Shown: in pieces, positions 115 to 62,719 of the stretch
Layout: each line of letters opens with the position of its first letter
Position numbering within the stretch: the stretch's first letter is position 1
Made by a program: the position numbers and the translations under genes
Source of the DNA: Podarcis bocagei
Lineage: Eukaryota
Direction: 5' to 3' (one strand)
NCBI GenBank assembly: GCA_964188305.1
Contig: OZ076885.1
DNA length: 64,000 nt
The notes under the pieces: generated by a model
Databases searched by the model: none
The model's input: only the letters and a program-made list of their open reading frames with translations
What the model was told of the DNA's origin: nothing

Positions 115-26349
<26,235 letters not shown>

Positions 26350-35300: not shown

Positions 35301-38300
35301 TATTAATAATTCTTAGGGATCTGATACTGTTAAATGCAAGTTGTTCTTAGTTCTGTCAAAGTCGAGTGCTTATGAACTGCTTACTTTTTGTAATGTTCAG
35401 TCTTCTGTCTGAGTGCTATAAAATCAATATTTTTGTTCTTCATTTTTTCAAAAAAGATTTTGAAGTTTAATAATGACAAATGTTATAGAAAATATAAATG
35501 AAAGAAAAAATATTTTTAAAAACAATAAAGTTGTTACAATTGCTAAGGAATAGGATGCAGTTCTACAATTTACTGAGTCAATAATAAAACACACCAAGTA
35601 GAAAAGGATGCATGTCTATAATTAGGTTTTATTTAGTACAGTACAAAGTTACTTTTTATCTTCTTTTTTTAAGTAAAATTTTGTAATGATTTTGCTTTGG
35701 GCTGTCAAACCATTTGTAATTATTTCATTTGTAATTTAATTTCTTTATAATTAAATTATACACCAGAACTTTATCAACTGCCATGTCTTTTAAAGTATAT
35801 TTTCCCTTCATTCTTCTTTCTGGTTCTTATTTTCTGAATGGGGAAAGAAGTTAGTCACTTTGTACAGCTTAATTGGGCTCCTCAATATGAGTCTGTTTCT
35901 TGATCTTGTTTTTCTCCACTTTTTGTTTCTGGAGAGGTTTTGCAGAGAGAAAAATATTCTGCACAATCACAATAATTAAATCAACTGCTGATAAGGCCAA
36001 AAATTTGCTTTTATGAAAAGCATCCAAGGAATGATAACAACCATTCAGTTGCCGCTTTTCAAGCTGTTGATCCTTAATCCCTCACTCCAAACAATTCTAA
36101 CTTGAAAATAAATATTTGGCAGATGTAACTGAAATGGGAACATCATCAGTTTGGGTAATTTAAGACCATATTAATGGAACTGAAGTAGTTAAACTAAGGA
36201 GAGGAGGGTAGACCAAGAGTGGATAATCTCAAAACTATGGGGAAATGGCAGACAGTTCATCAGCACCCATTGAAAAACTGCTGATGCTCACCAGTTGAGT
36301 TGAGCCAGTGACAACACCCACATGTGACTCAGACACAGAATGTGTCAGTGAACTCAGATCATTGGGGACACACCCCAGTCTACTTCTCTGCATCAAACAC
36401 ACTCCGCAGTGCTAAAGTGCCCTCACTCCATCAGCTCTAGTGCCTCAGCCAGCAATGATCCTCCATTGCAAGTCTTCAGATATCCCTTCAGGCAGGTGCT
36501 ATTGTTTTGGAGTGCAACACACAGACTGAAAAAGGAAGGGCACCCAACATAGTACCCACAGAGAGCACATGCATCCTTTTTGGGACAAGAATTCAAGACA
36601 TATCCCAGGACAGAAAGATTCTTGCCAAGCAGCCAAGGGGAGAGGCCATAGAGCAGGCATCCCCAACCTTCAGCCCTCCAGATGTTTTGGACTACAACTC
36701 CTATCATCCCTGACCACTGGTCCTGTTAGCTAGGGATCATGGGAGTTGTAAACCAAAACATCTGGAGGGCTGCAGGTTGGGGGTGCCTGCCATAGAGGCA
36801 CACCGACAGCAGCAACCTCCCGTGGTTCACTGCATATAGCATGGGAATAGAAAGCAAGAAACAGGAGTTCAAGACTCATCAGGGAAAAGGGATGAGGAAT
36901 GACCCCATTCAGCTTTTGTTTATGAGCACATACACAATCATGGAAGGGGGGAAATAAAGGGAACTCATTGCATTCAATCCATAGTACAACATCACTGAGC
37001 AGTTCTTAACCAATTAGACCAAAGCAATGGATAGGAATTGGACACAACATGGGTCATTGGGTCTTTCCCCATCCCCATGTGGTTAAATTACATTGATGGT
37101 TGTTACTTTGTTCCCCCCCCCTTGCTGTTTTAATGTTTTCTGACTGGTTTATTGCATTTAATTTTGCTGTTGGTTAAATTGTTATGTTGATGTTTTGACT
37201 TAGTTTATTGGGATTCACTGAGGAGAGATGGATATAAATATTTTAAATAAACAAGTAAATATTCACAGCACTTGTTGCAATACTATTTGCTCCCTTCCCC
37301 TGGTGGCTCCAGCATTTCAAGTCGGGTTTTGCCAACTGGGTCCTAGATTTTAGTTCATTTGCTTTGTGTCAGATCCATCTCCTTGGAAGTAGGGAGAGGG
37401 GATTAATGGTAAAGTTGAGGCAAGGCATTTGGTTATTAGTCTTTGTGCAAACAACTGCATGGAATATTTATTTACACATTTATTTGTAAAACCTATACCC
37501 TGGTCTTCCAATGCATTTACTACTTGCCTTGTGCAGTTTAGTTTAAAACCGTTGCAAAAGAAACATTTACATAAAACAAATAGCAGCATAAAATCAGAAC
37601 GGGTTTAGCAGATAAAAACATTCTAAAAGGGTGTATATGGGCTAATATTTTTTAAAGTCCATGTTATTTGAGATTGTTGGCCTCATCACTTGAAGGTTGT
37701 GAGCTGATGATACTGAAAATGTGTGTACTGTTGAATATTGCTGGTGTCCTGTGCAGTCAGAGCCCTAGCAGCAACATGTAGGTGTGCTAGGAAGCAGAAC
37801 AGTGTGGTGTCTGGCTTAATCTCTGAAATTTTCACCCTAGATAAAGAGTGAGTGCAAGCTCACCCTATCAGCCACCATTCGGGGGTGGTGAGGGCAGTAC
37901 AGCAGTGAGAAGGTGGGCCAGGGGACTTGGTCCAACCTCTTATTGCTTCAGGGCCTTATTGGCTGTGAGCCCCCAAAGCTAGAACTAATTGGCTGAACTT
38001 GCTGCTGCTCTTGTCCTGTTGTGGAAATGATTTAAACTAAAATGGTGGGCAGATGGAGGCTTGGTACACGTTTTGGTACTCAGCTATAGTGGCCTTCTCA
38101 GCCATCTGGGGAAGAAGGAAGAAGAGTACTGTTGCTGTTTCTGCCCAGCTGGGCTGATGGTAGGGTTGCCATATTGCCCAGTTGGTTGGGTTTTATCCAG
38201 ATGGCTTTGCCACCCAATGCCTATTTGCATGATTAGTTCCTCCTCCTGAAAGTTATTTAGCATAGACCTTACAGATTCCCTCATTTGAGAGAAAATGTGC

Positions 38301-41300
38301 AGGCACTATTTTATCCAAACATTTTGTGAGAAATGCATCTCGTTTCTCTTTCGATGCTCTTAGCCGATGAGTGAAGTTACAGCTATGATTGACACTTGGG
38401 AGATAACTGCAAACCATAGAGATAACAGACTATAGAGTCACGACCTTGTGTCTGCAAAAGGAATATCTACATGATAAAAAGATTCCTTTTGGTAACTACA
38501 TGGCCTTGGCCTCAAATGCATTATGGGTTATCTTATGTTTTAAACTTGAATCCTTTTTTGAAATTTGATTTAAAGCTTGATGGCAAACATGAGCATGTGT
38601 TACAGCATCTTTTAAAACTATGTTTCTAAAGAGTTATAAGCCCTTCACAGTGCCATGCTTTTTTAGATTAATTTTTTTATCCTTTCTGTACAGGAATTTG
38701 GAACATCAGTTTATAACTCTTCATCTACTACAGTATCTTCCAGGCAAAGAAAATTTCACAACACAATTTGTGAATCATCCAGTAAGCTCCCTCTTTGTTC
38801 TGTTTTAAATCTGTTGGGAGCCGTCCAGAGTGGCTGGGGAAACCCAGATGGATGGGCGGGGTATATAATAATGATGATGATGATGATGTGATTATGGTTA
38901 TTTTTAAAAATCACTGACCACAGTAACATGTGTCCCCACTTCACACTTCTCATTATTGACTATGTACATGCAAACAAGATGCCTGCTTGCTAAGTATTAA
39001 AATGTTTGCAGTTTTAGAGTGTATATAGTCTGGATGAAGTATCTAAACAAAGTTTGATAAAGTAGCATGAAAGGGGAAGTAAGGGAGAGGTGATAGCTGT
39101 GTCTAGAATACATTAGGAAATACAACAAAATCTGTGAGTGATATTCACACCTCCTTCACTCAGAGTTGACCCATTGAAAGCAATAGATCTCACATAGTCA
39201 TGATCATTAATTTCATTGGCTTTACTCTGAGTAACTCCTAGTTGAATACCACCCCATATGTTGTAAAAGAAGAATTTATGACAAACTTCCCTTAGACATG
39301 AAATTGACTAGGTTGGAATTTTTCACTATGCCAAGTGATTTGTATGGGACATGTGGAAGCTCCCCCAAGGAGGAAAAGGAATGAAAATACATTTGCTTTA
39401 TGGGGAGGTTCACCTTCATTTATATTCACACACTTAATAACCTACTGATGTAGGATAATGGTTAGTTCCAAAATAGTGGAAGGGAAGAATTTAGTTCTTC
39501 TGTTCCATAGAAATAATAAACTTTGTATAGCCAGAGGCAAAGGGCAAGACAAAGTAAAAGACAAGAATCCAGAAGAGTAAATGGAGCCAGAGAGTGGAAC
39601 ATGTCATGTGTGAAAGCCCCAGATATAAGAGGGAAATTTATAAGGTCTTCTAGCAGGAGGAATTCTATGGATCACTAGCTCCATTAATAGCATTTCTATT
39701 AAAATTATCCAGTGCTGGCATCACAAACTGGGCAAATGTAGAAGCAGGCACTGGGGCAAAATTGGTAATGAAAATATTAATAAAATGAACCTAGAACAGG
39801 ACATCAGATGGAAAATTGCCTTTGAAATTTAATTGGCTTTTGAATTGCCATTTTCAAAGTCTGTCTGCAGCTCTCTTGCCAGCTGGTTAATGATGGATTA
39901 CAGGATGAATACAATGAATATTATTATTTCTGGCTTATCTGGCAATGTCAAAAGCTATTTACCTGGTATTTAAGCATTGGCTTACAGTATTTTTCAGGAT
40001 CCTAAATTAATGGGAGCTGATCCTTCTCAACAACACAGAATATGAGCCTAGAGCTTATTAAATTTAACTCTTATTACACTGAGTCTACATCTTCATATTC
40101 CTTATGAAACTGGGTCACTTGAAAGTATTACTGGTGATTTTCTTAAAAAATAGTTTGTAATTGATTGTTATTTGTCACACATTATTTATGTGGTATGTAG
40201 AAATATGATTCAGAAGTTTTCCAGTGATATTAGATCACTTGTAAATGTCAATGTGTATGCTTAAATAGTTAATTTATTTTATAAACTAAATATTGGGAGG
40301 GGGGGGAAGATGATTTTTGCAAACTATTACAGATACTGGGCTGGATCAACAGGTTCCTTCTGTGAATGAAAGGGGTGCTTCTGTGAATATTAGGCTACTT
40401 CCATGAGTGGAAGGTAATCTTTGGATCCTGTTACTTCTGCTATTTAATACTGCGCTGTGCATTTTATAGAAGATGGAATGTTTCTTTGCCTAGAGGATGG
40501 GAATCATTACATGCTGCAGAAGGAGCAGGTCTATGGTGTTCCTTTAACATGTGAGAATGATACCCATCTATTTTTGAGGTGTCATTGCCCTTGGATTAGG
40601 AGCCTTTTATCTGGAAGGGAAACTTTGGATGCAGCCCATCCCATGCAAAAAACTGCAACAAGTAGTAATAGCTCTGAGTCCAAACAAAGTCTATGGTTTT
40701 ATATGTTAGGGGAAATTGCAGGTCTACATGGTACCCACTAATTGCAGGGAGGTACGCACTAAAATCTGTAATGTATGATGTACCTATAAGTAGGACGATT
40801 TATAAATGCTTAGCAGTAGCCAACACTCTATCACATGTTGGTAACAAAAACATTTTTCTCAGTTAAGAGATGTGTGATTTTCAGTCCACAAATGAAATGC
40901 AAACAATTGTTTTCTGAGAAAACCCTTGCAGTCCATTATCTGAAACATGTGTTGCTATTATCTACTTTCATGTGTCCATATATTTACCCCTTAACATGTA
41001 TATGACTTGCAAATAAAGGATTATGCATTCTGTCTTAATTAGATTCATTCACATGCTTTAATGGAGGTGAGTGCGTGCATTGGCAACTGTGTGACTGTAG
41101 TCGATATAATGCAACTGGATCAAGATGTCAGAAAAGTGAGTAGAAAGTAGTTTGCATGTTACATATTGTGTCTAGCATAACATAAGACCCACACTTATAG
41201 CTTTACTGGCAAACTTCTTTTCAGAAGAAGGCTCAATTGTATTCTTGGGCCTTTTTGAAGAGGTGATGGATATAGTAATTGATGGGTATAGTAAATAAAC

Positions 41301-44300: not shown

Positions 44301-47300
44301 GTTTATAATTTGTAACCCTAAGTCATAAAAAAATAGTGTGTGTACATTTCTTCAGATATGGGGGCATAATCTAAGAGTGATATAAGTGACTGGAAACAAA
44401 AATAGCATCGTTGACTGATAGCGGAATGCAGTAATTACTATAATTGGAAAGAGATTATTTATTTATTTCCCCATGAGGCGTCCAAAAAAATTTGCAATAT
44501 AATTAAAATATTAAACGGTTTAAAAAACTGCATAAATGCAAACAATTACACACACACACACAAAACAAACAAACAAACAAACAAACAAACACAAACATTT
44601 TAAAACAGCACATATATAAAATCAATTCTGACCCAATATCAATGCCAACTGGGTATTCAAGAGGTCTGTTGAAAGAGGAACATCTTTAGCAGGCACTGAA
44701 AAGACCATAGATAAGGTGCCTGTTTGATAGGAAAGGTAAAGGTGAAGGTGAAGTAAAGGTAAAGGTAAAAGACCCTGGATGGATAAGCCCAGTCAAATGT
44801 GACTATGGGGTGCGGCACTCATCTTACTTCATGTGGTCAGCGTGACTAAACCGCTTCCAGCGCTACTGAACACCCTGACAGAAGCCAGAGTGCATGGAAA
44901 TACTGTTTACCTTCGTGCCACAGCAGTACCTATTTATCTACTTGCACTGGTGTGCTTTTGAACTGCTAGGTTGGCAGAAGCTGGGACAGAGCAACTGGAG
45001 CTCACCCCATTGCGGGGATTTGAACCGCTGACCTTCCAATAGGCAACCCCACGAGGCTCAGTGGTTTAGACCATAGTGCCACCCGCGTTCCTGCCTGTTT
45101 GATATATAATGGGTATAAAGGATGACAATGAGTTTGTTTGTTTATCATGGTATTTGTTTGGCTTCCCAGGATACAATTACCATATACCATAGGGAACTTG
45201 TACATCCAAGCATTAGCTGGTTATGTCATTGTTAGACACCAGTATGCATTCTCTCTGGCTTGGGATGGTACCTCTGCTGTTTATATTAAGATGGCTCCTG
45301 ACTACTTGGGCAGAACTCATGGACTGTGTGGTAACAACAATGCCATTCTGCAAGATGAACTTGCCACTAGTTATGGTGAGTATTTCATCTAATTTATTAA
45401 GATGTTATTTGTGTTCCTCAGCAGTTACAGGCCTTACTTAGAAAGAGCAAGACTGCTATAGTCCTCTTTTTGTCTTGTTTGGCTTGCCTAAATGCCATAA
45501 TTGCTATGACTTCATCCATTGGCTAAAAACACTGAAAGGTGAGAGCAGGTTAGTTATCACAAGACAAATGGGCAAAATTTGCTTCATATCTCAGATTCTA
45601 CATGGCTTGCTTTTTAAAATGAAAGCTGGGAATCTGGCACATTATGGCCAGTGGGATGGTGGTGGCACTGCCTATTAAATAGCTTCTGTCCATGAGCAGA
45701 AAAGGACCAGAATTTCTTCTTGTGTTGTTTTAAAATGATTTCTCTGTGATTTCTATATATACTTTGCTCTTCAATATTGATGGGCTTCATGTGCATTTTG
45801 TGTGCCATTGTCTTTATACCATTTTCCCCCCGAGGACAAAATGTAATATAAGAAGTGGCCTTAGATGAGCTGTTGATTAGAATTTAGCATTAACAGGAGC
45901 AGTCACACTTCTATCCAACTATCTATCTGACAGAGATGCTTTGCATTTCTTTCATAGCTTCCATTTAAACCCGATCAATAAAAATGTTAATTTCCTGCAT
46001 TTGTGCACTTTCCCCTAGGAAAACTTACTGAAGACATTGAAGAGTTTGTAGAAAGCTGGAGAGAAAATCCTCCACAGGAGAACATCTTCTCCTGGGATAC
46101 CTCATTTAACTATGAGCCACCCTGTATGACTCAAAGTCAAACATTTTTACAGGTAGGCATGATAATTAATGTAAGGCAGGCACACTGGCTTGTTCCTGCG
46201 ATTGAGGGGGCTAGTGCTCCACGACATGCTCACACTTTGTGCACATGCTGTGCAATATGCTGATGTGTCGCATGCACATTATGTGGCATACATGAGTGAT
46301 ATGAGTGTGGCATGAGCACATGGCATGAGCACATCACTGCAAAATATTGATGAGGCCCAGCCCCCTCCTTGAAAATTGTGGGGGCCCTCGGCCCCTTCTA
46401 GGTGACACCCCTTATGTAAGACATAAACTTGTATGAGACTGAATTCTGAAACTTCTTATTTAAAAAATGACATAAATGACTTCCTAATTGCAAAAAGAAA
46501 CCGCTGCCCATAGTTATGGGATTGAGACTCCTAGTTAAATAACTGTGATGCATTGCTTACATAATAAACATAGTTTTTGGATGGCTCACATGGCTTTATA
46601 CTGGCTGAAACTGACATGACAGCAATTGAGCTAGCTGGGGTATAAATGGAAGATGATTTCAGGTTCTATCTACCTCCTGCTTTCAAGTTCATTTCTGATT
46701 TTACTCTGTACCTCAAACTATGTGGAAAATGTTATTTCCTAGAGGAGTGCTTAAGGTTCATAGATTAAGTAGATTTCTTATCATGCTTGAGTTATTTTTA
46801 ATTCCTCCTTTTATTTCATTCTTTGATATTATTATTCAGAGTTTCCTATTTTAGCATTCAAAGCCTGTAGCCAGCCAGTGGATTCCTGTGTTATCTAGTG
46901 CCAGAATTTAATCAGATAATTCTTCCTTACTTGTATTAAAATCTGTGAAATAGCTTTTGTCTCCATAGACAGCTGTCCATAATGACAAAGAAAAAGTTCA
47001 TCATAATTTTGGCTACCATATTTCAGTTTCATCAGAAAACTTATCCCATACCAAGTCTGCTTTAGATTTCCTGCATAGGGATGAGGAAAAAAAATACCAC
47101 CAGTTTGCTACTGGCCCTGGAGGGGGAAAAATTATTAGTGTTTATTCAAATAAAATCTGTCAACATACATACAGTATAGTGCATGTATTATGGAAATGTA
47201 ATATGAGTATGTTTAATTACAAATTATACATCTGTGTTGAATCTGATAGACCTCATTTGAAACCTAAAATATAAACAATTCACATGCTAGATGAAATATG

Positions 47301-50300
47301 AATTCACAATGCTGCCTCTTCAACTAAAACCTGTAGATGGAATGGTACTCCATTCATGGATCGTGGCATTCCTGTCTTCTCTATATAACAACCTGCACCT
47401 CCCTGGAAATCCACTCTTAAGGACTGGCTAGGCCAGGCACCGCCAAACTCGGCCCTCTAGATGTTTTGGGCCTACAACTCCCATGGTCCCTAGCTAGCAG
47501 GACCAGTGGTCAGGTATGATGGGAATTGTAGTCCCAAAGCATCTGGAGGGCCGAGTTTGGGGGTGCCTGGTAGGCTCTCTGGCGCAGAGTGAGATGTGAC
47601 ATAGGAACCTGCAACATGACATAGAAAAAATAAAAAACCCAATCCCCCTTGTGCAAACCTCCTACTCAGCAACATCTTTGCAGCCTTGCCAATCTTTGTA
47701 GGACCATTGCTGTCAGACTTTGGATTCAAAATCGAAGGCCGGATACTTATCAGATGATCTAGTTTCTAGACTATTTTTTGTTTTTTTAAAGCATTTTTTT
47801 AAAAAAGCTTCTTCCTTCACGCTAATTCTTTGTGTGTTTTCAGAGGACGTATGCATTCTGCAGCATTCTGCTCTGGAGCCCTTTCAAAGAGTGCCATGAA
47901 TTTGTGAGCCCATTTCCTTTCATGGCCAGCTGCACAAATGATCTATGCATGTAAGTGTCTTGGTTTGCGAAGTCCCGAATTAGCTGTCAGTGGTTGGGAT
48001 TCAGAGAGGTCCACTTAAAACATTTCTTGGTATGGCTGGGACTGTGCTGATTTTCAGCTTCTAGTTGCAGAACTTCATACTGATGAATGCCATTCCAAGC
48101 AGTATCTTTAGGAGTAGCTTTTTAATGTGCATAAGGTACCATGGTAGCTGTGGGAATGGGGTTCTTTGGGTTCTGGCCATTAAGTTTCTGCATATATTAA
48201 ATACATCTTTTTTGGCGGGCCTGCTTCTCTTCTCACTGTTTTTGACTGTCCTTTGTGGTACCACTTCTAGTTATAATAGAATGAGTGGCAGTAGAGTTAA
48301 AGCCAAATATTTATTGATTTAAACATTATATGCATTTTGAATGTTCACCATTGGTATAATTTAGCAGTAAACCATGGCTTAGCGCTATGGAAACAAGACT
48401 CAGCATGACTTGTACTCAAATGCAATCACTGTCTCTACTCTTTGTTTAGCTGCAAGGAAGGGATTGGCAGCTTCCATTTCTGTTTTAGCTTAACAGCAGT
48501 TTTATGTGTTGTGCCAGTCCTAAACTGTGGTTAATTAGAACAGTGAAAATAAGGCTGTGTCAATTTAAATTTTTTTTGTGTTAAGGTCAGGAGCTGATAA
48601 TGCAACTTTGTGTCGAGCATTAACTGAGTATGCAAGGACTTGTGCTCAAGCAGGAAAACCTCTCCACAACTGGCGGGCACAATTTAAGGAATGTGGTATG
48701 CAATGACAAGGTTTTAGAATGCTGTCTTCTGGCAAAATATTCTGCATATCGTTTATTCCCCTTTCTGCAGGTTTTCTCATTTTTAAATATAGGTTCATCT
48801 GGCCTTGCTATGGACTCCGTTGGTTGCGTGTTTTGTAATGGGGGCCTGGTAGGAATTTTTCCATCTGGCAAATTGGCAGGGCCATTTGGTTTTCAGCTAC
48901 CACCGTAGCAATCGTCACAACTTTGTAAGGTTTGGCCATTAGGCATTGGATCAGCAATCATGGGGAGGGGAGGTGGGGGCCATCACCTGCCCCTCCAAGC
49001 TCAAGGGTATTCAGTTAAAGAAATCTAGGGATTGGCCTGGGTCTTGTCCAAAACCCCTGCGGGGGGGGGGGGGAGCTAGGGCCATACCAGGACCCCACAG
49101 GGACACCGGGGGGGGGGGGTAAGCGCCAGTCAGGACCCGCTGGCAGTGCTCCCTCTGGTGTTGTTCATCCTTTAAGGGATTCCCCATGATGATGCCAATG
49201 CCTAAGTCAATACCACTCACATTCTGTATTCAATAAAGTTGTGGCCTAAATTTTGCCCAATTACTTAAACTAAAATCCCATGTCACTGTTTCATTTTTTT
49301 GGGAACTGGGGGTCTTGAATCGCAACTGAGTATGCAAGGACTTGTGCTCAAGCAGGAAAACCTCTCCACAACTGGCGGGCACAATTTAAGGAATGTGGTA
49401 TGCAGTGACAAGGTTTTAGAATGCTATTTTCTGGCAAAATATTCTGCATATCGTTTATTCCCCTTTCTGCAGGTTTTCCTCATTTTTAAATATTGAACCT
49501 TAATTGGTTATTGTATGCAAGTTCAGACTTTAAGACTAACCAGTATATGCTTTTGCATGGAGACCACTTCACTAGATGCTTAAATTAAAATTAAAGTAGC
49601 ATCAATTTTCCACCCCAGGAAGGAGAAGCATAAATCATTTAACATTTCTTCATTTCTTCTGTTTTTCAGTCATTAAATGTGAGGAGCATCTTGTCTACAA
49701 TGAATGCATTGACTGCTGCCCAGTTTCATGTCAGCAAAAAACTCATTGTGTTGACAGTGAACTGCCCTGTGTTGATGGATGCTATTGTCCAGATGGTAAT
49801 GCAGTTTTTGGTGTGGAATTTTGTTAGAAGTTGTGGCCTTTCAGGAGCTTATGGCCTTTCTGCAACCTACAAGACACAGTAATTAAGTCACACTCCAGAT
49901 ATTTGTCAACACAACCAGATGGGTTCATTCTAGAGGCAATGGGTGGTATTCAACTAACATTTCCTGTCAATACAAGGATTTCCTCTTGTGCAATAGAACT
50001 TTCCTCTCTTCTCTTGTTCCTATGCACATTCTCTGCCTTTTCTAAGTCTGCTACAGAGAGTTGGAGGAGCCCCCAGAGCAGATTCTATGAACGAGCTAGA
50101 CTATAAGGGTTCAGGCGATCCCTGAGGTATCCTGGACCCAAGTTGTTCAGGGCTTTGTAAATCAATGCAAGAATTTTGAACCTGGCTCAGTAGCAGATGG
50201 GCAGACAGTGCAGCTGTTTTAACAATGGTGTCACATGTTCTTGACCAGAAGCTCCCCTCAGCAATCTGGCTGCAGCATTCTGCACCAGCTGGAGTTTCCA

Positions 50301-51726
50301 AACCAGACCCAAGTGCAGCCCCACATAGAGCTCATTATAGTAATGCAGCCTTGCTCCAAAACTCCTTATGACAGCACCCAATGGCTATATTAAATAGCAC
50401 TGGGAACAGACTTATTGGGAGTAAGCCTTACAAAAATTGTTCTGACATTTTAGAAAACAGGCTTAGGCTGAGAGGCTAAGTGATAGCATGCCCTATATTG
50501 ACTTGATAGTATGTTAGGAAATCAAATGGACTTCTGTGAAAATATTTTTGGTATTGGGCTGCAACTATTTATAATTCAAGTTGTTTTTTCTTTATGACAA
50601 AAGCAGCTTTTAACTGTTTCATAATACCTCTTAACCTTCTGTTTTGCTTTTGTTTTTTATTATACCATTAAACTTTGCAGTATAAGATGCAATGAGGAAA
50701 CATACACAAGGATTTTAATTATAATTTATCACATCTTCATTTTCTAGCTAGAAGTACTAGGCAGTTTTTTAATGATCCTTTTCAAAGCATATGGCTCTAA
50801 TTTTGTTCTTATTGTCAAATGTTCATTTTAGGACTTATTTATGAAAACAAATTATGTGTAAGATCATCAGAATGCCCTTGTGATTATCACGGATCTGTCT
50901 ACAGAACTGGTGCTGTGGTTCATGAAGAATGCAACAACTGGTTAGTAACATTCCATATATTTATTCCCTTTAATATAGCACGAATTCCCTAAACAATGTC
51001 CAATATATAAGCCTTAGCATATATACCAGTCCTTACTTTTATAAAGCATACACCCTCATAGAAAGGTGCTTTCTCTTTCCTTTCGCCATTTGTAGTTTTG
51101 TGGAATAATCTTAATTTTAATGGTTTTGCGTACTAAATATGGTGACCAGTTCTTTTGCATGCCTTTGGTGCATGAAGGTTTCAAGCTGCAAATTCCCAGA
51201 CTCTTCTCCTTATCATACAATCTATGCTTGAGTTTTTAAATAAGTGCTGACAGGACGGTGAGGAAGATGCTGTACTTGCAGTCAGCTGGTTGTGATAGGC
51301 TTGCTGAACCTCACAACATAGGGAGGATGTTTCCATCATTTCTTTGAGAGATTTACTTAGCTTTGAGAGATTTACTTAGATCTGAAGGAGCGTCTCCACC
51401 CCCATCGTTCTACCCGGACACTGGGGTCCAGCGCTGAGGGCCTTCTGGCGGTTCCCTCACTGCGAGAAGCCAAGTTACAGGGAAACAGGCAGAGGGCCTT
51501 CTCGGTAGTGGCGCCCTCCCTGTGGAACGCCCTCCCACCAGATGTCAAAGAGAACAACAACTACCAGACTTTTAGAAGACATCTGAAGGCAGCCCGGTTT
51601 AGGGAGGCTTTTAATGTTTGATGTATTGCAGTATTTTAGTATTTTTTTTTGGAAGCTGCCCAGAGTGGCTGGGGAGGCCCGGCCAGATGGGCGGGGTATA
51701 AATAAATAAATAAATAAATAAATAAA

Positions 51727-51785
<59 letters not shown>

Positions 51786-60700: not shown

Positions 60701-62719
60701 CTCTTTATAGAAATGAATGTCCCTGCTATTTTCAGGGTATTGACTATTCACCTGGAGAAAACATAATCACGTCTTTGGGAAAATGGTAAGCTATTCCCAC
60801 AGAAAGGGCAGTTTCTAATGTTCTGTGGGTTTTGCCACGCATACCATCTGGCGGAATTTTATGCTGCTGTGTTTAGCAGACACTGGGTTTGCCCCATCCC
60901 TTCTGACTTTGGAACAGAGATCAGCCACAGGGAGAGAGCATTGGTGTTGCTTTAAAAGATGGCGCTGTCCCTTTCCACTGCATTCCTCCCTTCTGCTCCT
61001 GCAGCTGGCCTGTCTCACAGTCTGTATGGGCCTTCACTAGCTATGCTTCTGGAGGGCTAAGAATGAATTTTTAAGATGGCTTCCCTTGTGGCCCCATCTT
61101 TTTTCACCTGCTCAATACTGTATGTATTGAGGTCTGAAATATTAATTTGATTTGTGACTTGGGTCATATCCACACCATAGATTTAAAGCACCTTTAATAA
61201 TCAATTCTGTGTGCTGCTCTGGTTCACCAGAAGTGGCTTAGTCATGCTGGCCACATGACCCGGAAGCTGTATGCCGGCTTCCTCAGCCAATAAAGCGAGA
61301 TGAGCATCGCAACCCCAGACTCGGCCACGACTGGACCTAATGGTCAGGGGTCCCTTTACCTTTTAATACTCAATTTAAAGCACATAGCCTCCCCCAAAGA
61401 ATCCTGGGAAATCTGGTGCAAGAGTTTCTTAAAAGGGAAATCAGAGGGAAAATAGCATGTATGTACAGTACTGCCACCATTCTTTTCTTTGAAGAACTCT
61501 GACCAGATTCCTTAAGTTTATACAAAAAGATTCTGATGGTCCTGACTTCTTGCATTTTTGTTTCAGCCACTGCAGAGATGGAATGATGAACTGTGAGGAA
61601 AACAACATTGGTATGTAACATAAAGATGCTATTTAACCCAGAGTTCCCTCGTAGAGTCCTAGCCGTGCCAAAGTTAGAGCTCCCTGTTATACCCATCAAA
61701 CATGGGCAGGAATTTTCTAAGGGGAGGCCTGAGTCAGACCGGGACCCAATGGATCTCAAGCTGAGCTCAGTGCTATTCAGGCTGGCACAGCGCTTTGTCT
61801 GCCTTTGCTTTCTTTCCTGTGAGTGATGGGACTGTGGATGCTGGCTATTGGCTCAGCCTCTCTGTCATGACTTGCCACTTCTCGACTGTGGTTTGGATTA
61901 TAGAATCATAGAATCATAGAGTTGGAATAGACCACAAGGGCCATCGAGTTCAACCCCCTGCCAAGCAGGAAACACCATCAGAGCACTCCTGACATATGGT
62001 TGTCAAGCCTCTGCTTAAAGACCTCCAAAGAAGGAGACTCCACCACACTCCTTGGCAGCAAATTCCACTGTCGAACAACAAGAATTATCTTGCTCATTTT
62101 TAGTGTGCTGTTTTGGTTTGTTCCCCAGTAACTGGTAGTCAGAGGTATACTGACTCTAAACCTTGAGGTTCTACGCAGCAGTTAGGATTAGTAGTCCCTG
62201 ATAGATTTCTCCTCCATGTATTTGTCTAAACCTCTTTTAAAATCATATGAACTACTGGCCTGCCCACGACCACAACCCATAACAGAAAATTCCATAAATT
62301 AATGATGAAATGTGTGAGGAAGTAGTTTCAGTTGTCCATTGTGAGTCATGATTCTCCTCCAGTCAGTTTCATCAGATGGCCTGGAGTTCTTGGTGTGATG
62401 AGAGAGGGACAAAAACTCTCTAAAGAATTAGATGTGTAGGACTTAAGACCAAATGTATAAATACAAAATGGAGGAATCTGGCTAGGCTTTAGCTTTAAAG
62501 AGGGTGCTTTGGATTTTATGGTAAAGAGCAAACTAAATATGATGTATGTGTGTCTTCTATTGTTGTAGTTCATGACTGTCCAGATGACCAGATCTATGTA
62601 AACTGCAGTAACCCACAAACTATGGAGCTTGGCAGGGAGAGAACATGTGAAAACCAACTGCTAAACCTCACTATATCGGCACATCTTCCTTGTTTTTCAG
62701 GATGCATGTGTCCTCAGGG
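32272..62719 (+). CDS. OTOG: Otogelin, coding exons 1-23 as a spliced span; gene continues beyond the right edge
   Basis: 23 GT-AG exons give 2702 nt of open frame with EGF-like, VWD, C8 and TIL modules (e.g. [37 protein letters not shown]); head-to-head adjacency to USH1C favours OTOG over OTOGL. Confidence 0.96.
32561..32624 (+). CDS. OTOG: OTOG exon 2 ([21 protein letters not shown])
   Basis: Polypyrimidine tract + CAG, donor AG|GTAAGT, completes a plausible signal peptide. Confidence 0.8.
33128..33287. mobile_element. Old Penelope-like remnant, inverted pair
   Basis: GAGTGATGTTGTTACCTTTAGAAAC at left and GTCTTTAAGGTGACACAAGACTC at right are imperfect inverted copies related to the 16430 fragment. 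Confidence 0.55.
34073..34127 (+). CDS. OTOG: OTOG exon 3 ([18 protein letters not shown])
   Basis: 55 nt, TAG/GTAAGG, phase 2->0 fits neighbours. Confidence 0.7.
36654..36789. mobile_element. hAT-type MITE
   Basis: Long TIRs CAGGCA...TGCCTG, exact 8-bp TSD CCATAGAG (36646-36653, 36790-36797). Confidence 0.9.
38694..38781 (+). CDS. OTOG: OTOG exon 4 ([29 protein letters not shown])
   Basis: 88 nt, CAG/GTAAG, phase 0->1, resembles human SSWERRLHRAKCAPS as recalled. Confidence 0.8.
41043..41135 (+). CDS. OTOG: OTOG exon 5, EGF-like ([30 protein letters not shown])
   Basis: 93 nt, TAG/GTGAGT. Confidence 0.95.
41401..41665. mobile_element. Tc1/mariner MITE, second CpG-rich subfamily
   Basis: TA|CAGTGGA...GAGGTATGACTG|TA; inverse copy at 54751. 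Confidence 0.8.
41901..42055 (+). CDS. OTOG: OTOG exon 6, VWD1 start ([15 protein letters not shown]...)
   Basis: 155 nt, TAG/GTGAG. Confidence 0.96.
42481..42715 (+). mobile_element. tRNA-derived SINE (MIR/Squam-like)
   Basis: A box TGGTGTAGTGG, B box GTTCAAATC, core ...CCTAACCTAC..., A-rich tail. Confidence 0.75.
43984..44102 (+). CDS. OTOG: OTOG exon 7 ([22 protein letters not shown]...)
   Basis: 119 nt, CAG/GT. Confidence 0.96.
44730..45091 (-). mobile_element. Full-length Sauria SINE
   Basis: (ACCTTT)n tail, tRNA-like head with A/B boxes, exact 13-bp TSD TGCCTGTTTGATA at 44717-44729 and 45092-45104. Confidence 0.9.
45170..45375 (+). CDS. OTOG: OTOG exon 8 (IQLPYTIG...THGLCGNNN...)
   Basis: 206 nt, CAG/GTGAGT, visible in ORF 45138..45392. 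Confidence 0.97.
46019..46152 (+). CDS. OTOG: OTOG exon 9 ([13 protein letters not shown]...)
   Basis: 134 nt, TAG/GTAGG. Confidence 0.96.
47434..47569. mobile_element. hAT-type MITE, same family
   Basis: Same TIRs and body; degenerate copies at ~53300-53408, ~55850-55970, ~63088-63125. Confidence 0.85.
47844..47950 (+). CDS. OTOG: OTOG exon 10, C8 ([35 protein letters not shown])
   Basis: 107 nt, CAG/GTAAGT. Confidence 0.96.
48586..48695 (+). CDS. OTOG: OTOG exon 11 ([36 protein letters not shown])
   Basis: 110 nt, AAG/GTATGC, phase 2->1. Confidence 0.95.
48791..49323 (+). mobile_element. Unclassified 533-bp insert, possibly a DIRS/Ngaro-like terminal repeat
   Basis: GC-richer than the host intron, bounded exactly by a ~170-bp direct duplication, has G13/G12 runs and AATAAAGTTGTGGCC; family assignment is recollection only. 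Confidence 0.55.
49324..49493 (+). repeat. Direct duplicate of 48622..48790 (3' 74 nt of OTOG exon 11, donor, 95 nt of intron)
   Basis: Base-by-base comparison shows 3 substitutions and 1 indel. Confidence 0.97.
49670..49795 (+). CDS. OTOG: OTOG exon 12, TIL ([20 protein letters not shown]...CYCPD)
   Basis: 126 nt, CAG/GT. Confidence 0.96.
50104..50385 (-). mobile_element. Degraded L2-type ORF2 fragment
   Basis: [13 protein letters not shown]...[15 protein letters not shown] is an L2 signature. Confidence 0.8.
50832..50940 (+). CDS. OTOG: OTOG exon 13 ([20 protein letters not shown]...)
   Basis: 109 nt, TAG/GTTAGT. Confidence 0.96.
51379..51785 (+). mobile_element. 5'-truncated L2-type LINE 3' end with (TAAA)n(TTA)n tail
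   Basis: Highly similar to 2301..2646; short tail-only copies at ~38812-38889 (+), ~57058-57125 (+), ~52998-53074 (-). Confidence 0.85.
52144..52190 (+). CDS. OTOG: OTOG exon 14 ([15 protein letters not shown])
   Basis: 47 nt, CAG/GTATGT. Confidence 0.96.
52479..52624 (+). CDS. OTOG: OTOG exon 15, VWD2 start ([20 protein letters not shown]...)
   Basis: 146 nt, TAG/GTAAGA. Confidence 0.97.
54751..54992. mobile_element. Tc1/mariner MITE nested in an older minus-strand SINE (~54597-55015)
   Basis: TA|CAGTCATACCTC...GAGGTTCCACTG|TA; SINE sequence continues on both sides. Confidence 0.8.
55490..55622 (+). CDS. OTOG: OTOG exon 16 ([14 protein letters not shown]...)
   Basis: 133 nt, CAG/GTAAGT. 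Confidence 0.97.
56517..56694 (+). CDS. OTOG: OTOG exon 17 ([11 protein letters not shown]...[14 protein letters not shown])
   Basis: 178 nt, TAG/GTATGT. Confidence 0.96.
57277..57401 (+). CDS. OTOG: OTOG exon 18 ([18 protein letters not shown]...DPCDIHLQS)
   Basis: 125 nt, AAG/GTAAGT. Confidence 0.96.
58279..58491 (+). CDS. OTOG: OTOG exon 19, C8 ([10 protein letters not shown]...YFEQCRRD...)
   Basis: 213 nt, CAG/GTAAGT. Confidence 0.97.
59679..59844 (+). CDS. OTOG: OTOG exon 20, TIL ([20 protein letters not shown]...)
   Basis: 166 nt, TAG/GTAGG. Confidence 0.95.
60711..60785 (+). CDS. OTOG: OTOG exon 21 ([24 protein letters not shown])
   Basis: 75 nt, TAG/GTAAG. Confidence 0.96.
61213..61364 (+). 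mobile_element. Sauria SINE 3' half
   Basis: Similar to the reverse complement of 44730-44890; ends CCCTTTACCTTT. Confidence 0.8.
61567..61610 (+). CDS. OTOG: OTOG exon 22 ([14 protein letters not shown])
   Basis: 44 nt, CAG/GTATGT. Confidence 0.95.
61901..62076 (-). mobile_element. CR1 LINE 3' end
   Basis: (ATTCTATG)n octamer tail on the minus strand plus CR1 3' sequence. Confidence 0.85.
62569..62719 (+). CDS. OTOG: OTOG exon 23 ([13 protein letters not shown]...[12 protein letters not shown]...CMCPQ)
   Basis: 151 nt, TAG/GTAAGT. Confidence 0.96.

Follow-up and report, generated by a model that had tools for sequence, protein, structure and literature searches.

How does a piece of unrelated DNA come to lie between two nearly identical copies of a stretch that contains most of a coding exon, while the gene that carries it keeps its reading frame? 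This question is raised by a locus of the lizard Podarcis bocagei (GCA_964188305.1, contig OZ076885.1), located in a stretch of 64,000 nucleotides whose full length was analysed and which is called the window hereafter. The original prediction on this DNA had interpreted the structure as an insert flanked by a very long target duplication and had proposed two origins for it: an element family that regularly makes such duplications, or an insertion coupled to repair or to the integration of a circle. The parts of the locus, in their order along the DNA, are the following.

48586..48695, plus strand: coding exon of 110 nt, predicted to encode the C-terminal half of a C8 domain, with its acceptor AG at 48584-48585 and its donor GT at 48696
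48622..48790, plus strand: left copy, running from the last 74 nt of the exon through the working donor to 95 nt into the intron
48791..49323, strand not assigned: middle piece of 533 nt, anonymous nuclear-like DNA
49324..49493, plus strand: right copy, in which a dead partial exon (49324-49397) is followed by a decoy GT donor (49398) and 95 intronic nucleotides
49494..49669, plus strand: remainder of the intron (176 nt), after the right copy
49670..49797, plus strand: next coding exon, predicted to encode the start of a TIL domain

The alignment of the left copy (169 nt) with the right copy (170 nt) by blastn gives 166 identical positions out of 170 (E 3e-83), the differences being three substitutions, all of them transitions, and one indel of a single nucleotide located in a short C run. 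The homology between the copies ends sharply on each side, the preceding bases being t and c and the following bases a and t. Both repeats abut the middle piece without any spacer, with edges that are exact to the base, and the right copy runs on without break into the rest of the intron. All four differences are found within the 95 intronic nucleotides and the 74 exonic nucleotides are identical, a skew which is non-significant (P ~0.27, assuming that the right exonic copy alone was free to change). In the self-comparison of the 64-kb window, this pair is the sole near-identical local direct repeat, and the remaining repeats are dispersed copies with 76-93% identity. The description from which we started is confirmed by these results on several points: the stretch of 169 nt does recur as 170 nt with three substitutions and one indel; the DNA lying between the copies is, as claimed, foreign to the sequence around it, and matches neither its flanks nor the rest of the window; and the copied stretch does begin in a coding exon and end 95 nt into the intron, the left copy supplying the last 74 of the 110 nt of the exon (67%).

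The order of the C8 and TIL domains identifies the host gene, taken for OTOG (with the exon as its number 11) in the original prediction, as a gene of the VWF/mucin/otogelin-type D-assembly class transcribed from the plus strand. The preceding exon, near 47.9 kb, corresponds to positions 1-31 of the Pfam C8 profile; the translation of exon 48586-48695 corresponds to positions 36-67 of the 68 positions of the same profile (E 2.2e-08), and that of exon 49670-49797 to positions 1-40 of the 55 positions of the TIL profile (E 1.2e-04). A further C8 and TIL are found by Pfam downstream, at 58.2-59.8 kb. The exons 48586-48695 and 49670-49797 are in phase through the split codon G|TC, the acceptor having been checked. 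Since the first of these exons ends the C8 domain and the second opens the TIL domain at profile position 1, the predicted reading frame is unbroken across the whole structure formed by the duplication and the insert. It had been argued that one of the breakpoints lies inside a coding exon and that the completion of this exon by the left copy keeps the gene intact. Both statements hold: the left edge of the duplication, 48621|48622, falls within exon 48586-48695, and the exon series C8 1-31, C8 36-67 and TIL 1 continues through it.

As the left copy keeps the exon together with its donor, the splicing to the next exon is predicted to be unchanged. If the middle piece was inserted, the length of the intron would have risen from 272 nt to 974 nt. 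The decoy donor (49398) is identical to the real donor (48696) through position +7, and two ways in which it might be used were considered. The extension of the exon to the decoy donor is rejected, since the read-through from the real exon meets a stop after two intronic codons. The use of a pseudo-exon ending at 49398 appears unlikely, because a stop codon already closes the coding frame three codons before the right copy and because the candidate acceptors found upstream of this copy have poor pyrimidine tracts (0.44-0.48).

The nature of the middle piece is central to the question of its origin. Its GC content is 52%, versus ~39% in the flanks, with a peak of ~60% near its centre. The sharpest GC step is located at the left junction, 48790|48791; on the other side, the AT-rich right end of the middle piece passes gradually into the intron that follows it, and the right copy grades smoothly into AT-rich intronic sequence. 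Runs of 13 G (49061-49073) and 12 G (49108-49119) are present within three degenerate G-run motifs. The observed/expected ratio of CpG is 0.26, versus 0.24 for the whole window; because this depletion is the same as that of the window, the middle piece has the appearance of vertebrate nuclear DNA that has long been resident, and not that of recent foreign or organellar DNA. The open reading frames of the locus and the resident repeats of the window with which the middle piece was compared are listed below.

48630-48905, plus strand: open reading frame across the left junction
49014-49220, minus strand: open reading frame within the middle piece
44732-44769: Sauria-SINE-type (AAAGGT)n tail
61899-61922: CR1-type (ATTCTATG)n tail
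2302-2647 and 51413-51785: (ATT)n-tailed family, with the (ATT)n tail of the second copy at 51727-51785
3465-3606, 36654-36795 and 47427-47569: palindromic MITE-like family

The middle piece shows no likeness to the Sauria-type, CR1-type, (ATT)n-tailed or palindromic MITE families of the window, and the searches by blastn and nhmmer, relaxed settings included, detected neither a second copy nor a distant relative of it in the 64 kb. These results reject its membership of a resident repeat family and, by the relaxed search of the window, its origin as an older and diverged copy of a local sequence. No tRNA was found in it by ARAGORN and no match by Rfam at E values up to 1, which leads to the rejection of a SINE or tRNA-derived element, on both counts, and of a hammerhead/Penelope mini-insert, on the second. 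The short open reading frames of the middle piece have no match in Pfam, and a coding fragment is rejected on this ground. A foldback or MITE is rejected as well: the predicted folding of the middle piece is not significant (z-score -0.71), and the lone inverted match found in it lies away from its ends, 48939-48966 pairing with 49181-49205, and is marginal (E 0.02-0.05). The lack of terminal inverted repeats on the middle piece, together with a duplication of 169 bp versus the fixed 2-10 bp of such elements, argues against a cut-and-paste DNA transposon. Neither a poly(A) nor a microsatellite tail is present at either end, on either strand. Finally, a mitochondrial or foreign origin is rejected by a CpG depletion equal to that of the nuclear background and by a base composition that is non-mitochondrial.

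A short inverted match was also observed at the edges of the structure: the middle piece begins with the reverse complement (aggttca) of the first seven nucleotides of the intron remainder (tgaacct, from 49494). No mechanism accounts for this match, which may be due to chance. Snap-back priming does not fit it, since the end of the primer would be unpaired, and neither does a terminal-repeat reading, which would come with no target duplication.

The history that we propose, and that we hold to be probable with moderate confidence, is that of one old insertion, made at a break with its two nicks 169 nt apart and with both overhangs filled in. The first nick would have occurred inside the coding exon, at the TT|AA sequence of 48621|48622, and the second one 95 nt into the intron, at 48790|48791 in present coordinates. 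The single-stranded stretches of 169 nt left at both ends would then have been filled in, and the unrelated, nuclear-type piece of 533 nt would have been joined between the filled ends, thereby giving the order exon start, copy, insert, copy and rest of the intron. A filled-in staggered break yields by construction a piece that is bracketed exactly and without spacer, and this accounts for the edges of the middle piece. The earlier interpretation of the structure as a form of insertion with a target duplication of 169 bp is upheld in this respect, the copies abutting the middle piece exactly. Furthermore, the presence of unrelated DNA between the copies and the lack of element hallmarks fit a staggered-break fill-in with filler, a fit which is descriptive and does not test the pathway.

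Two sub-routes would lead to such a product. On the one that we put forward tentatively, the first nick would be made by an endonuclease of LINE type and would be followed by an aberrant, tail-less, target-primed synthesis on a template that belongs to no element family, the second nick occurring far downstream of the first. The other one, a possibility to which we give scarcely less credit, would start from a staggered break of another kind, which would be resolved by fill-in and end joining with the capture of a stray DNA fragment. The LINE-type and the plain repair-capture sub-routes appear about equally likely, and in either of them the enzymes at work are those that we infer. The left edge of the duplication is a TT|AA sequence (48620-48623, context gagcatt|aactgag) with TTT 13-15 nt upstream. 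The target signature of the squamate Bov-B element is 'Tn-TA' (PMC13295347), and the left edge fits both this signature and the L1-type core (TT|AAAA). It hints weakly at a candidate first-nick site of LINE-endonuclease type, the weight of this hint being that of four to seven bases: TTAA occurs by chance at 0.7-0.9% of positions, and T|A with TTT 8-17 nt upstream at 1.4%. Because the middle piece has no tail and no LINE or SINE similarity within the window, what speaks for the retrotransposition-type sub-route is a set of four bases at one boundary. On either sub-route, the event would more probably have been a one-off accident than the habit of an element family. Indeed, between the two origins offered in the original prediction, the repair-coupled, aberrant one-off event is the better fit, and the family of elements making long duplications is without support in the 64-kb window.

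A rival history was absent from the earlier reading. The 533 nt could be native intron, and the right copy (49324-49493) a 170-nt duplicate of the sequence lying 702 nt upstream, placed before the last 176 nt of the intron through template switching in the course of replication or repair, or through the end joining of a free fragment. The local-copy and insertion histories are equally economical, each of them requiring two new junctions, and the former dispenses with foreign DNA and finds its template within 1 kb, like the templated insertions already known (PMC8421209). The junctions themselves are less favourable to it: those at 49323|49324 and 49493|49494 show no microhomology (0 nt), while some is normally involved in template switching (PMC8421209), which argues against the replicative version of the local copy, and the blunt, loss-free insertion of a free 170-bp copy would add a further unexplained step. 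The composition of the middle piece speaks on both sides, since its CpG depletion is like that of resident DNA and its AT-rich right end merges with the next part of the intron, but the sharp GC step at 48790|48791 would have to fall within native sequence. As for this step, found at one junction, it is weak evidence for an insertion; old insertions in introns look alike. The presence of TT|AA at the start of the copy would, moreover, be a coincidence. The internal evidence leans to the insertion over the local copy without settling the choice, and we judge the local copy rather unlikely. A related scheme, in which the entire 702-nt unit would have been duplicated in tandem before a deletion took place, is rejected, since what follows the right copy bears no relation to the beginning of the middle piece.

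The other explanations seem to us more distant. An artefact of assembly, in which merged haplotypes, a false join or a chimeric read would have created the duplication or the insert, is highly improbable: the G12-G13 homopolymers of the middle piece are error-prone sequence and would favour it, but the window contains no N or gap, one sequence placed twice would show zero differences, and two alleles would be unlikely to show four differences over 170 nt (P 0.0004 to 0.09 at heterozygosity 0.2-1%). A haplotype merge also fails to explain how 533 unique nt are joined to the repeat on both sides. Least probable of all would be an element family or an integration route dedicated to such events, with duplications of at least 100 bp as its regular product, since the middle piece bears no element hallmark and has no second copy in the 64 kb. 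The integration of a circle, which belongs here and which had been put forward in the original prediction, explains nothing extra, because the duplicated stretch would already need to be attached to the insert in the circle.

To return to the insertion at a staggered break, the divergence of the copies gives an estimate of when it would have taken place. The K2P distance between the copies is 0.018 (Poisson range 0.4-5.2%), and the event, as dated by its two copies, is old. Assuming ~1e-9 substitutions per site per year, its age would be roughly 9 million years (about 2 to 26), a value which could be an underestimate in the case of gene conversion between the copies.

The locus provides a clean natural example of a harmless insertion with a breakpoint in a coding exon, in which the filled-in stagger would have rebuilt both the exon and its donor. 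It also leaves in the intron a spare partial exon with an intact donor, i.e. raw material for exon duplication or for decoy splice sites. The principle is already present in the L1 literature (PMC5223499), and the value of the locus lies in the example and in its possible use as a phylogenetic marker. Could there be in the lizard genome a recurrent tendency of retroelement-type insertions to be resolved with second-strand breaks 40 to 170 bp away? We consider this very doubtful. If so, a property of the Bov-B/RTE machinery, of that of another LINE or of host repair could underlie it, parts of exons and splice sites would be regularly duplicated, and exonic insertions would be tolerated without loss of the gene. 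Should long duplications prove to be common genome-wide in the lizard, a question would arise about LINE second-strand cleavage or host repair.

The premise of the original prediction that long target duplications need a special explanation was too strong, since duplications >100 bp are a documented minority outcome for L1, L2 and HERV-K. The RTE-1 element of C. elegans may make very long duplications as well, a case on which our argument does not rely. Long target-site duplications of L1 were described by Gilbert (2002, 2005) and Symer (2002), according to the summary given in PMC5223499. In HeLa cells, up to 10% of the recovered L1 events have duplications >100 bp; in NER-deficient cells most L1 events have them and tail-less inserts occur too, and the authors point out that the long duplications are able to copy exons (PMC5223499). 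With the zebrafish L2 element ZfL2-2 in wild-type DT40 cells, one of 25 insertions was accompanied by a duplication of 1228 bp (PMC2666801). The present locus resembles these LINE events in that a direct duplication >100 bp exactly brackets the insert, with a TT|AA-type site at its 5' edge, and tail-less inserts and the copying of exons are reported among them as well. It differs from them by its insert, in which no LINE, SINE or retrocopy can be recognised and which lacks both a poly(A) and a family tail, so that reverse transcription is a step that we infer. HERV-K (HML-2) insertions with flanking duplications of 111-450 bp are also known (PMC5488345). They share with our locus the character of natural insertions, fixed or polymorphic, with an unconventionally long flanking duplication, as well as the doubt between true target duplications and a later rearrangement; unlike the present insert, which has no LTR features, they are LTR elements placed by an integrase.

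The local-copy history has its counterpart in MMBIR/FoSTeS (PMC8421209), where a nearby stretch is copied and re-inserted near its origin. The catalogued cases of this process are short, inverted, located within 100 bp and marked by microhomology at the switches (PMC8421209), whereas the present copy, of 170 nt, lies in direct orientation 702 nt from its template and is blunt at both junctions. The insertion at a staggered break finds its own counterpart in the tandem duplications generated from staggered double-strand breaks by NHEJ or polymerase-theta end joining, for which the fill-in of the break is an experimentally shown source of duplications (PMC8355091). In these, as proposed here, the interval between offset nicks is duplicated by fill-in, and a variant with additional junction sequence, 'TD+', has been described (PMC8355091); the scale differs, the experiments involving overhangs of ~43-50 nt and small junction inserts, and our locus a stagger of 169 nt and a piece of 533 nt. 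In conclusion, set beside these systems, the locus would be a further case of an outcome that is rare but already known, and would not represent a new type of element.

The middle piece, which separates the left and right copies of the duplicated stretch, begins with seven nucleotides (aggttca, 48791-48797) whose reverse complement is exactly the heptamer directly following the right copy (tgaacct, 49494-49500), so that the pair encloses the middle piece and the right copy. Since neither snap-back priming nor a terminal-repeat reading fits this arrangement, the inverted match may be due to chance.

The middle piece also contains:
49061-49073, G13 homopolymer run
49108-49119, G12 homopolymer run
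48963-48993, 49065-49095 and 49108-49138, three degenerate copies of a motif (G-run plus GGCCAT..GGACCC)

The two homopolymers, 47 nt apart, sit in these motif copies. The region is error-prone in sequencing and potentially G-quadruplex-forming.

Other features lie elsewhere in the window:
2302-2647 and 51413-51785, two copies of a retroposon-like family
3465-3606, 36654-36795 and 47427-47569, a GC-rich element (~140 nt) present three times
41039-41140, strand of the studied gene, short cysteine-rich open frame (C..C.....C.C......C)
44732-44769, (AAAGGT)6.5 array
61899-61922, minus strand, (ATTCTATG)-type octamer repeat

The cysteine-rich frame looks like an EGF-like exon, but comparison with Pfam at E up to 0.1 gave no hit. 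The retroposon-like copies share 86% identity over 354 nt, and they terminate in ATAA and (ATT)n microsatellite tails. Within the window, the GC-rich copies align to one another in both orientations (80-93% identity), which indicates a family that is palindromic and MITE-like; the studied exon has one of these copies 1 kb upstream of it. The (AAAGGT)6.5 array is the reverse complement of (ACCTTT)n, the tail reported for Sauria SINEs, and this correspondence suggests a minus-strand Sauria SINE immediately to its right. The octamer repeat is the classic 3' tail of CR1 LINEs.
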